This document shows positions 18,401-21,400 of a DNA stretch of 64,000 bases, one piece after another; position 1 is the stretch's first letter, and each line of letters starts with the position of its first letter. The notes below the pieces were generated by a model. It had not been told where the DNA came from. It searched no databases and saw only the letters and a list, made by a program, of their open reading frames with translations. The DNA is from Macrostomum hystrix (Eukaryota; Animalia; Platyhelminthes). The position numbers and the translations under genes are program-made. Where the stretch lies: positions 3,472,001-3,536,000 of the forward strand of contig CATNEN010000034.1 of assembly GCA_950097015.1 (NCBI GenBank), given 5' to 3'.

Positions 18401-21400
18401 GCAGCTCGAACGGGGCTGGCGTGTCGCCGAGGAGGATGCGCGGCTGAACCTTTCCGTTGACCTCCCGGGGGTCGAGCGAGAAGAACGCGACGACCGACTT
18501 GGTGCGGCTCAGGTCCACCTTCCAGGTTTGGGACCAGCGCACGAGCCAGTCGGCCGCCGGTTGCAGGGCCCGCTCACAATCCCGAGGGGTGGTCCCTTGC
18601 GCGCCGAAGGTGCTGTCGTCGGCGTACGCCAGCGTGAGGCAATTCTTGGGGGCGCCGTCCAAGAGATCGTCCATGTAGATCACCCACAGGATCGGGGCGA
18701 GGACCGACCCCTGCGGCAGCCCCTCGGAGAACACGATTTGCTTGCAGGCCGCACCAACCCACCGCACGAAGGCCCTCCTGTCGGAGAGAAGTCCCTTGAG
18801 CCAGCGGATGAGGCACGTGGGGATCCCCTTCCGACCGAGCTTAACGATGAGGGCCGCTTTCCAGACGCGGTCGTAGGCTCTGGAGAAGTCTGCAAGCAGC
18901 AGAGCGGTGCGGGAGGCCGGCTTCTTGGCCTGGAATCCGTCAAAGATGTACTGAGCCGCCGCGGCGATGTGCTCCTCCGTGGAGCGGCCCTGACGGAAAC
19001 CGGCTTGCGACGGGTGGAGGGCGTTGCTTGCCTCGAGGATGTAGGACAGCCGCTCGTTCACCATCTTCTCGGCGAGCTTGCCCAGGCAGCTGAGGAGGCT
19101 GATAGGGCGGAAGCTGGATGTCAGGCCGGCTGGCTTGTCCGACTTGGGGATCGGGCGGATCTCCGCAAGGCGCCACGGGGCGGGCACCTCCCCCGTCCTC
19201 CACGAGAGGTTCAGGAGGTCCAGGAGGCAGCGGAGCCCCAGGTCGGACAGATGCTTCAGCATGATGTTCGCGACCCCGTCCGGTCCCGGGGCCGAGCGGT
19301 CCGGCAGGCGCCCCAAGGCGCGGCGGAGGGCGTCGGGCTGGAAGTCGGAGCAGGGGCCGCTGCGGAGGCCTTGACAGCTGCAGGGGGCGCGGAGCGTGTG
19401 ACGGGCTTCTTGGATAACCGGCCGGTCTTCCGCCTTGTTCTTGGGGAGCCTGCTGACGGCGGCGTACTCCCGGCAGAAAAGCGCGGCCTTCTGTTGGTCG
19501 GAGACGGCCGATGCCCCCGAGGAGCCCTGGATGGCAGCCGACGAGGGTGTCCCCTGGGACCGGCCGTCGAGGGCCCGGATGATCCGCCAGAGGTCGGCGG
19601 AACACAGGTCTTGCCCCGGGTCGGTGATGAAATCGCGCCACAGCGACTCCTTGGCGCGGAGGATGGCGTGAGCAGCCGCGGCGGCAGCAGCCTGGTACGC
19701 GGCCGAGAGCGCCGGGTCGTCCGGGCTCGCGCGAAGCGCTTCGAGCGCTGCGCGGCGGGCGGTGCAAGCCGCCTCGGCTTCCGGGCACCACCAGGCGATC
19801 GGGGCGCGCCGGCAGCCTCTCGGGATGGCCGCCTTGGCGGCGCTGGTGACGGCGGACGCGAACCTGCTGGCGGCGGCGGGCACCGTGCGTGGGGGGCGCT
19901 TCGGCCAGCTGGCCAGGGCCTGGTCGAGGGACCGCTGGAACAGGTCCCAGTCCGCCTTGTGGTAGGCGTACCGCGTCAGGCGCTTGGTGCTGGAGCGGGC
20001 CGGGCCGGAGGCTGCGAGGTCGATGATGATCGGCAGGTGGTCTGAGCCGATGTGCTCCCCGGTTCGCCACTCGATCCGGTCTTGCCAGGAGGCGTGGGCG
20101 AAGGAGACGTCAGGGGAGCTCGGCAGGCCGCGGGGGCTGATCCTAGTTGGGGAGCCGTCGTTCAGAGCGACCAGGTCGTAGGTCGTCGCCCAGTCTTCGA
20201 GGGCCCTACCCAGCTCGTCGTCGTCCGCCGAGGCGTCCCACATCCCGTGGTGGGCGTTGAAGTCGCCCAGCACCAACGAGTCCCGTGAAACGGGGATCCA
20301 GTCGGGCTCGAAGTCGTCCGTGCGACCATCTGCGGCGCGGACCGGCGGGAGGTAGATGTTGATCACATCCAGGGGGCGCGGTAGCCGGGGGTCGTGGATG
20401 CGGAGGCCCGAGGCTTCGGCTGACGTGGCGTGGGTGACGAGCTCGCCTAGTGGAAGGTCGGCGAATTGAATACCCTCCTTGACAAGGAAGCAGACGCCCC
20501 CGTGGTGGGTTCTGGCTGCCTCCCCGTCGCGGCCAATGTTGCGGTCCTTCCGGCCAGCGATCTGCCACCCTTTGAAGCGTGGGGCCGCTGTGTTGCCGGA
20601 CAGGTTCGTCTCCTGGATGCAGGCGACGTCGGCGCCCTGCATCTCCAGGAAGTGGAGCAGTTCCAGCTTGCGGGAGCGGAGCCCTGCCGCGTTGAGCTGG
20701 ACGATACGGAAAACCGCCCCGCTGTTGTTCGGCGCCCCCGCTCGCGCTGGTTTCGCCATCAGGGGGGGCGGGGGTGCCGGCGCGGGGTTCGGGGGAGGTG
20801 GAGTCGTAGCCGTTGGCGTCTGGTGGGTGCCCGAGGGGCCTGCAGCCGCGGAGGGGGCCGGAGTCGTGGCAGGCTGTGGCGCTGAGGCGGCAGGCTGGGG
20901 GGCACAGGCGGGGCAGTGCCACGGCGCTTTGTCCCGGTGGAGCCGGTTGATGGCCGCGATAGCGAGGCGGGAACAGCGGCGATGCCACCACAGGCCGCAG
21001 CTGGAGCAGCAGGTGGAGTAGCCCCTGGCTACCTCCTCGGCACAGCCTCCGCACAGGGAGGCCGGCCCAGGGTTGGGCTCGACGTCACCAGCTCTGAGAA
21101 GCAGCTGAGTCAGGTGAGCTGGGAGGCCTGGCTCAGCGTGGAAAAACCCGGGGCGCTCGAAGACCCTCGCACGGGTCCGGGGTGGTGGCTGCACTTGGCC
21201 GGGCGAACCCGGACGGTCCCGCCGCGTGAAGGCGGCAGCCATGGGGAGCGCGCAAGCGCGCTCCGGGAGGCCGACCCTCCCGACCGTGCCTTGAAGGTTG
21301 TCCCTCAGGTGGTAATTGCCCTTAAGTCTCAAAGCCTTTTCTCCGCTTGCAAACACCTGCAAATGATCTATATTATAAGCTTTGGCTTGTGTTCTTTTTT

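Follow-up and report, generated by a model that had tools for sequence, protein, structure and literature searches.

The closest described counterpart of the element reported here is L1Tc, an Ingi clade retrotransposon of Trypanosoma cruzi. The element in question is a long interspersed nuclear element (LINE) lying on the minus strand of a 64,000-nucleotide stretch of Macrostomum hystrix DNA (contig CATNEN010000034.1, positions 3,472,001 to 3,536,000; hereafter, the window). L1Tc is opened by an HDV (hepatitis delta virus)-like ribozyme (L1TcRz/Pr77), which cleaves at nucleotide (nt) 1 of the element; its sole open reading frame (ORF), which codes for APE, RT and RNaseH domains, carries an in-frame N-terminal 2A sequence (L1Tc2A) right after the ribozyme (PMC3185411, PMC5814959). 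The organization of the window element is the same: cleavage is predicted at nt 1 of a 5' terminal HDV-like core, and a single ORF has a 2A (DxExNPGP) in its N-terminal part, with APE, RT and RNase H after it. The two ribozymes differ in their architecture. L1TcRz is compact (77 nt), has a contiguous P1 helix and starts with C1; in the window element two hairpins break up the proposed P1, the ribozyme is ~100 nt long, the ORF starts within helix P2, and a PHD-like finger follows 2A. The original prediction, made from the letters of the window, viewed ribozyme, start codon and 2A as a compact cleave-initiate-skip expression module. The layout is present, but is not new, since L1Tc already joins a 5' HDV-like ribozyme to an in-frame 2A (PMC3185411, PMC5814959). 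Moreover, 2A-PHD-APE layouts have been reported in metazoan non-LTR (long terminal repeat) retrotransposons, in a paper which does not mention ribozymes (PMC3708506). The interrupted P1 is the only candidate novelty, the core and the association of ribozyme, 2A and single ORF being already known.

Insertions near P1 have been described in other HDV-like ribozymes. In R2 elements the ribozyme processes a co-transcript to give the element 5' end, as predicted here; the core may be a long way from the P1 5' strand, J1/2 ranging from 23 to >700 nt, and P1 co-varies between lineages (PMC3774820). The extra sequence of R2 resides however in J1/2, after a complete P1 of ~7 base pairs (bp), whereas in the window element the insertion comes after only 3-4 pairs, and is followed by 2-3 more P1 pairs. 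In further contrast to R2, the window element shows no target specificity, and encodes an APE rather than a restriction-like (REL) endonuclease. In drz-Agam-2, too, the P1 5' strand and P2 are separated by a peripheral domain with a stable helical structure; there, the structured J1/2 (P1.2) "pinches" P1 and P2 together, and cleavage is up to ~1000-fold faster (PMC4908430). The P1 of drz-Agam-2 is an intact 6-7-bp helix, and P1.2 leaves it at the top; in the window element the branch point is within P1, the hairpins are two, and the arrangement is a four-way junction rather than a three-way one. It had been anticipated that known insertions usually sit in J1/2 or P4, and the published ones cited here do follow a complete P1 (PMC4908430, PMC3774820).

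At the level of single bases the best term of comparison is the CPEB3 ribozyme, in which L3 (U20-U26) is UUCACGU, J1/4 is G37 U38, a one-pair P1.1 is accompanied by U-U, and C57 is the first base of J4/2 (bioRxiv 10.1101/2022.09.22.508989). The parallel with CPEB3, drawn in the original prediction, is borne out for L3, J1/4 and the catalytic C. The 7-nt L3 is identical in a sister subfamily of the element (sf2), and ends with C in the subfamily of the window copy (sf1); the putative catalytic C is followed by N-A-A. CPEB3 differs in its intronic context and in its first pair, which is G1.U in place of the predicted G1-C; moreover, the window element has an interrupted P1, lies at a LINE 5' end in a coding region, and finds no CPEB3 match in Rfam.

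The HDV-like core

All coordinates given below are those of the window and refer to its minus strand, nt n of the element corresponding to position 21286-n. The first 100 nt (21285-21186) read GGUC, a GGGAGG/CCUCCC hairpin, a GGAGCGCG/CGCGCUCC hairpin, CC, A and UGGCUGCC, followed by GCC, UUCACGC, GGC, GGGACC, GU, CCGGG-UUCG-CCCGG, CCAA and GUGCAGCCA, letter for letter as in the original prediction. Strands are ordered as P1-P2-P3-L3-P3'-P1'-J1/4-P4-J4/2-P2', which is the nested double pseudoknot of the HDV-like family. The P2 5' strand UGGCUGC (nt 45-51, 21235-21241) pairs with the 3' strand GCAGCCA (nt 94-100, 21186-21192), and the helix is found in the centroid fold of the 100 nt. P3 is a 3-bp GCC/GGC helix closing the 7-nt L3 UUCACGC (nt 53-65, 21221-21233). 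It is followed by the P1 3' strand GGGACC (nt 66-71, 21215-21220), invariant between sf1 and sf2 and different in relatives, and by J1/4, GU (nt 72-73, 21213-21214), which corresponds to CPEB3 G37 U38 and is invariant in intact family members. G72 of J1/4 is able to pair with C58 of L3 to form a one-pair P1.1, for which no covariation support was found in the family. The P4 hairpin CCGGG-UUCG-CCCGG (nt 74-87, 21199-21212) precedes J4/2, CCAA (21195-21198). The putative catalytic C had been placed at 21198; this is nt 88, the first base after P4, like CPEB3 C57. C-N-A-A, in the form of CGAA, CAAA or CCAA, occurs in every intact member of the family. What is missing, among the structural hallmarks of HDV-like ribozymes, is a contiguous 6-7-bp P1 starting at the cleavage site.

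About 20 other cores of this kind exist in the genome. A covariance model (R1), built from P2, P3 and P4 of sf1, sf2 and a third family, yields 22 matches genome-wide (220 Mb in 42 contigs, the set searched for copies as well). One further core was reached via the leader protein in a LINE locus (L048), and two reside in metagenome contigs bearing the closest database relatives of the ORF (50% and 34% identity). In 17 distinct sequences, the alignment of which was fitted to the covariance model, 87% of the P2/P3/P4 cells are paired and 11 of the 15 pairs change on both sides. These include 4 of the 7 pairs of P2, 2 of the 3 pairs of P3, which is 92% paired, and all the 5 pairs of P4, whose loop varies in relatives from 4 to about 40 nt. 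None of 500 shuffles reaches any of these measures, and slid partners are paired in 20-54% of cases. Relatives also have a perfect contiguous 6-bp P1, located directly before a J1/2 of 1-3 nt and each time of different sequence: GGGUUC, GGGUCC, GGAACC and, in the closest relative L055, GCUUCC face the 3' strands GGACCU, GGACCU, GGUUCC and GGAAGC, respectively. The contiguous P1 helices thus co-vary among relatives, as P2, P3 and P4 do throughout the family. As judged by family membership and covariation, the core of the first 100 nt is a genuine HDV-like fold. The covariation of copies had been indicated as a way to check the fold, and the core helices stand up to it.

A second line of evidence comes from the comparison of sf1 and sf2, which share 58.6% of amino acids (aa) and, outside of the core, ~46% of third codon positions. 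Identity in the core codons is 0.93/0.87/0.73 by codon position, and at synonymous third positions the core reaches an identity of 0.83, versus ~0.5 everywhere else, APE and RT included. Identical nucleotides are 49/58 in the core and 20/24 in hairpin 2, versus 21/35 in the stretch just downstream of the core. Changes within the core affect only the loop and inner pair of P4, the final base of L3, the variable N in C-N-A-A and the two outer pairs of P2, one of which is G-C in one subfamily and U.G in the other. All these are places where HDV-like ribozymes tolerate change. In turn, no change is seen in P3, in the first six positions of L3, at any base of the P1 3' strand, in J1/4, at the catalytic C or at the A-A of J4/2. 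Coding cannot explain such conservation, because the leader peptide flanking the core is only 31-40% identical between sf1 and sf2, and the leader is discarded by 2A. The pattern of substitutions indicates that the core is under selection at the RNA level.

The position of the core with respect to the end of the LINE is precise. The 12-nt target site duplication (TSD) CCTTCAAGGCAC is found directly upstream of the element (21286-21297), and is exactly repeated at its 3' end (16836-16847); this sequence has 3 matches versus 0.24 expected. The claim that nt 1 coincides with the TSD boundary is therefore confirmed, since the TSD abuts 21285. The genome hosts four further sf1 copies, 95-100% identical to the window element. 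In three of the four the alignment begins precisely at 21285; in the fourth (L005) it begins one base later, with C where the first G stands. Two of the other sf1 copies are flanked by 13-bp TSDs which stop right before GGTC. Members of sf2 are about eight, five of which begin at the same base (GGTGGGGG); their TSDs are 12-13 bp long, and their tail is (CTAA)n. Altogether, the TSDs of three sf1 and two sf2 copies stop directly before GGU, which is the predicted cleavage site, and TSDs and copy starts agree in locating the core at the exact LINE 5' end, as originally proposed. Copies are young, as denoted by the 95-100% identity and by an ORF still open in three sf1 copies, and this indicates that the 5' architecture supports transposition. 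One otherwise intact copy (L004, G000:C38:4751126-4751321), with an open frame of 1543 aa, has a stretch of 10 nt, CGCGCTCCCC, duplicated in tandem in the space separating hairpin 2 from the ATG; 10 unpaired bases would thereby come to lie in the proposed junction.

The proposed interrupted P1 helix

The ~38-nt two-hairpin insertion has been found only in sf1 and sf2. In the window element, hairpin 1 (GGGAGG-GUCGG-CCUCCC, nt 5-21, 21265-21281) and hairpin 2 (GGAGCGCG-CUUG-CGCGCUCC, nt 22-41, 21245-21264) are both predicted in the minimum free energy (MFE) and centroid folds. Hairpin 1 has a different stem in sf2 (GGGG...CCCC), and a metatranscriptome variant starting with GGUC has GGAGG...CCUCC; hairpin 2 is nearly identical in sf1 and sf2, with G-C replaced by G.U at the bottom of the stem. 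In both subfamilies no linker separates the two hairpins from one another or from either P1 half, so that with a split P1 the arrangement would be a four-way junction.

The insertion would split the P1 5' strand. The bases which precede J1/2 are CUCCCC in sf1 and CUUCCC in sf2; when placed by homology with relatives having a single-base J1/2, the distal three can pair with the GGG of the P1 3' strand, but the proximal three cannot pair with ACC. The proximal partner is provided by the first bases of the element. In sf1 these are GGUC (nt 1-4, 21282-21285, cleavage being predicted 5' of G 21285), complementary to GACC at 21215-21218; the proposed distal half is CC (nt 42-43, 21243-21244), or CCC with the inclusion of 21245, which pairs with GG(G) at 21218-21220 and is the positional homologue of the distal end of the contiguous P1 of relatives. 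sf2 starts with GGUG, and both subfamilies keep the initial GGU and CCC before J1/2. Six Watson-Crick pairs are obtained only across the insertion, in a 4+2 or 3+3 register in sf1 and a 3+3 register in sf2. It had been claimed that GGGACC pairs fully only if the two halves are brought together across the hairpins, and this is indeed so, as the best contiguous complement pairs at 5/6 positions with a C.C mismatch. When the stretch from nt 1 to the end of the P1 3' strand is folded without constraints, the MFE structure of either subfamily has terminal GGU(C) paired with (G)ACC; the same helix half is present in the MFE fold of the 100 nt. For sf1, the calculated energy of hairpins, P3 and P4 is -40.3 kcal/mol; it becomes -44.3 kcal/mol with the split P1, which thus contributes -4 kcal/mol, and -50.7 kcal/mol when P2 is also added. 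On these grounds it is plausible that the split P1 forms.

The mechanism favored here may be described as follows. A CPEB3-like core, derived from a family with a contiguous 6-bp P1, would have received ~38 nt in the P1 5' strand after nt 3-4. The hairpins would fold first, bringing the terminal GGU(C) beside the (C)CC that precedes J1/2; the invariant GGGACC would then pair with both halves, rebuilding a 6-bp P1 across the four-way junction, and P3/L3, P1.1, P4 and P2 would complete the double pseudoknot. C88 (21198) would catalyse the cut 5' of G1 (21285), removing the upstream transcript and setting the 5' end of the element. The ribozyme would also contain the start of translation, which in sf1 is an AUG in J1/2-P2 and in sf2 involves no AUG, and 2A would shed the ribozyme-encoded leader peptide. 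Insertion downstream of the cut would be the only route for a ribozyme-terminated LINE to gain a lasting 5' leader, and perhaps a promoter.

Several considerations weigh against this scheme. The match of the terminal GGU to ACC is its weakest part, having a chance probability of ~0.02 from leader composition, and many LINE 5' ends begin with G. The proximal P1 half is just 3-4 bp long, beside the scissile bond. The conservation of GGU and CCC does not count as two independent events, because sf1 and sf2 represent a single lineage. No third lineage with the insertion was found in the genome by a pattern search for the same L3 with other P1' strands, which returned only sf1, sf2 and an unrelated abundant family, nor in metagenomes scanned for L3-P3-P1'. 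Six metagenome matches to the latter pattern were discarded, being unrelated GC-rich, probably bacterial, sequences devoid of the surrounding fold. P1 pairs 5-6 (YC with GG) are invariant in the family and lack covariation support; their bases could instead extend P3, as the MFE fold suggests. An alignment of 5' leaders made by MAFFT placed the first bases out of register, and was not used for pair counts. In HDV-like ribozymes P1 defects usually abolish activity (PMC3774820), and among the papers searched none turned up that describes a P1 broken on the substrate strand. One RNA-library contig reaches 89 nt beyond G1 in the upstream direction, and represents either uncleaved RNA or DNA. A contig ending at 21285 was considered as an RNA end and rejected, as it denotes an assembly break at a repeat boundary, the contigs' copies being ~95% identical. 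An internal promoter could just as well produce a precise 5' end. Finally, searching window positions 14000-24000 against Rfam with cmscan (E<=10) gave no HDV, CPEB3 or drz match, a negative of little weight. Six related loci searched at the same threshold gave no HDV-type match either, canonical relatives with a contiguous P1 included, and because these are missed too the Rfam result is uninformative for the whole family.

From the observed sequence, its complementarity and conservation, the covariation of the core and the 5' ends of copies, we infer a split P1 and a cut at nt 1; the chances that the RNA cleaves at G1 through such a helix look evenly balanced. The broader statement, that an HDV-like ribozyme may accommodate a linker-free four-way junction within P1, at a distance of 3-4 pairs from the scissile bond, without losing cleavage at nt 1, is slightly more doubtful.

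The explanation that comes next is that the fold is kept while cleavage is unimportant, which is possible, though rather unlikely. The two-hairpin leader would be an internal promoter, or a protein-binding element, setting the start at nt 1; the core would serve cap-independent or non-AUG initiation, RNA stability or the assembly of ribonucleoproteins, and the GGU/ACC match would be vestigial or coincidental. The case of L1Tc fits well, as promoter and ribozyme coincide in the first 77 nt, and transcription start and cleavage site are the same (PMC3185411, PMC5814959). Hairpin 2 is conserved at the DNA level (83%), some unusual initiation is needed anyway in sf2, which has no AUG before 2A, the probability of a fortuitous GGU is not negligible, and the RNA-library contig extending upstream of nt 1 is equally in line with this view. 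Yet, the catalytic C, the A-A of J4/2, the G of P1.1 and the whole P1 3' strand are invariant in spite of synonymous saturation. Moreover, a structural role would not obviously need a GGGACC complementary both to the new terminus and to CCC, and the linker-free four-way junction has been kept in both subfamilies.

An internal cut is improbable. According to this hypothesis, P1 is contiguous, and is formed by GCUCCC (nt 37-42; GCUUCC in sf2) and GGGACC, with CA as J1/2. Hairpin 2 would work as a masking switch, cleaved RNA being the mRNA and uncleaved full-length RNA the transposition template. This is the best contiguous complement in both subfamilies (5/6 pairs), and the sf2 sequence is identical to the P1 5' strand of L055. 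Yet, in both subfamilies pair 2, which is adjacent to the cut, is a C.C mismatch, and such mismatches abolish activity elsewhere (PMC3774820). The 8-bp GC hairpin must melt, the energy of sf1 with P1 at nt 37-42 and hairpin 2 melted being -27.2 kcal/mol, 17 kcal/mol worse than the split conformer. No genomic copy starts there, though one 5'-truncated copy starts 5 nt upstream, and positional homology with relatives having a single-base J1/2, hence with A as J1/2, leaves 3 pairs only. That the core is a dead relic or a chance resemblance, kept only to encode the leader peptide, could be argued from the missing Rfam match and the coding nature of the region, but is very improbable in view of the synonymous conservation, the poorly conserved and discarded leader, and the co-varying helices described above.

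If the split P1 is functional, the window element would carry a new topological variant of the HDV-like family, and offer a natural four-way-junction version to structural biologists. The supposedly fixed rule that an unbroken 6-7-bp P1 defines the cut would be relaxed. Descriptor searches demanding a contiguous P1 would miss ribozymes of this sort, and motifs used for mining would need a new branch. The element would also illustrate how a LINE ended by self-cleavage gains a 5' leader or promoter, that is by insertion inside the ribozyme and downstream of the cut; a leader inserted upstream of the cut would be deleted at each cycle. If the RNA is inactive, a conserved HDV-like fold would have been retained for something besides cleavage, and its location beside an AUG-less ORF and 2A would still bear on ribozyme-assisted initiation of translation.

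Translation start and 2A

In the window element, the ATG (21240-21242) is located inside the ribozyme, and opens an ORF of 1460 codons plus stop (16860-21242). The overlap of core and ORF start had been noticed originally, and is exact: the A of AUG is J1/2, UG are the first two bases of the P2 5' strand, and 2A is found downstream. The 2A StopGo motif, DVEPNPGP, is encoded by codons 53-60 (21063-21086), and is followed by the PHD-like Cys cluster. In sf2, the position of the ATG is occupied in that frame by AAU. Two sf2 loci (L067 and L068, at G000:C5:1631794 and C2:2241022) have a 1379-codon ORF which is open from the first base of the element; its first in-frame AUG is at codon 177, well past 2A, and the only nearby AUG is out of frame. 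sf2 also lacks the PHD-like finger of the window copy. The 2A motif of sf2 is DVETNPGP. The conservation of 2A in an ORF with no AUG before it argues for an unconventional initiation linked to structure. R2 ORFs similarly often lack an AUG, and ribozyme-assisted translation initiation was proposed for R2, a case which resembles the AUG-less ORF of sf2. L055 and L056 carry 2A after the ribozyme as well (DIHPNPGP and DVERNPGP, respectively), and the module is therefore old in this clade.

Element anatomy and other loci of the family

The window interval 21285-16848 corresponds to one full-length non-LTR retrotransposon, 4.4 kb in length. Its ORF encodes, in order, the leader, 2A, the PHD-like Cys cluster, APE, RT, RNase H and a remnant of zf-RVT; Pfam matches are RVT_1 (1e-31), Exo_endo_phos_2 (8.5e-16) and RNase_H (6.6e-9). 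A 3' UTR (untranslated region) is missing, as the TAA stop abuts a (CAA)4 tail (16848-16859), stop and tail together reading TAACAACAACAACAA (16848-16862); the same tail is found in two other copies. The G+C content is about 70% in the element, versus 33-46% in its flanks; over window positions 17000-21000 it ranges from 66 to 75%, versus 28-47% in surrounding DNA. The proteins closest to the ORF in databases are unnamed metagenome ORFs, at most 50% identical, and the exact ORF sequence is absent from the protein collection in which it was looked up. Given the G+C contrast and the distance of database relatives, it is possible that the window element is a recent arrival from elsewhere.

Some related loci have features of their own. 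The third family used for the R1 model (L026, L027 and L028, at G000:C38:236269, C3:195713 and C39:14876760) has a canonical ribozyme with GGGUUC/GGACCU as P1. What the three copies share extends for 90 nt or more before the predicted cut, and takes in an apparent ORF end (…TCCGAATAG). This ribozyme may thus lie within some larger repeat; alternatively, the target in which the element inserts may itself be repeated. In L056 (positions 170-290), the JGI metagenome contig with 34% identity, the P1' strand GGUUCC finds its best match in GGAAU, which precedes P2 by ~37 nt. Such pairing would imply a long J1/2 after a complete P1, and large insertions near P1 would then be recurring in the clade.

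A motif resembling P3-L3-P1', CCTTCTCGCGGCGGACTCGT, occurs at least 35 times in the genome, versus 1 for the control. It is usually found in triplets, at a spacing of about 1727 and 1415 nt (as an example, at G000:C1:3465458, 3467185 and 3468600), and the same triplet resides on C1, C7, C25 and C26 (L078, L079). A P2 3' strand was not found at these loci within the 83 nt examined. Upstream of the motif, GAGCCC could pair at 5/6 positions with GGACUC, and CCAA comes after a hairpin; the repeats may represent another HDV-like family, hosted within a composite repeat.

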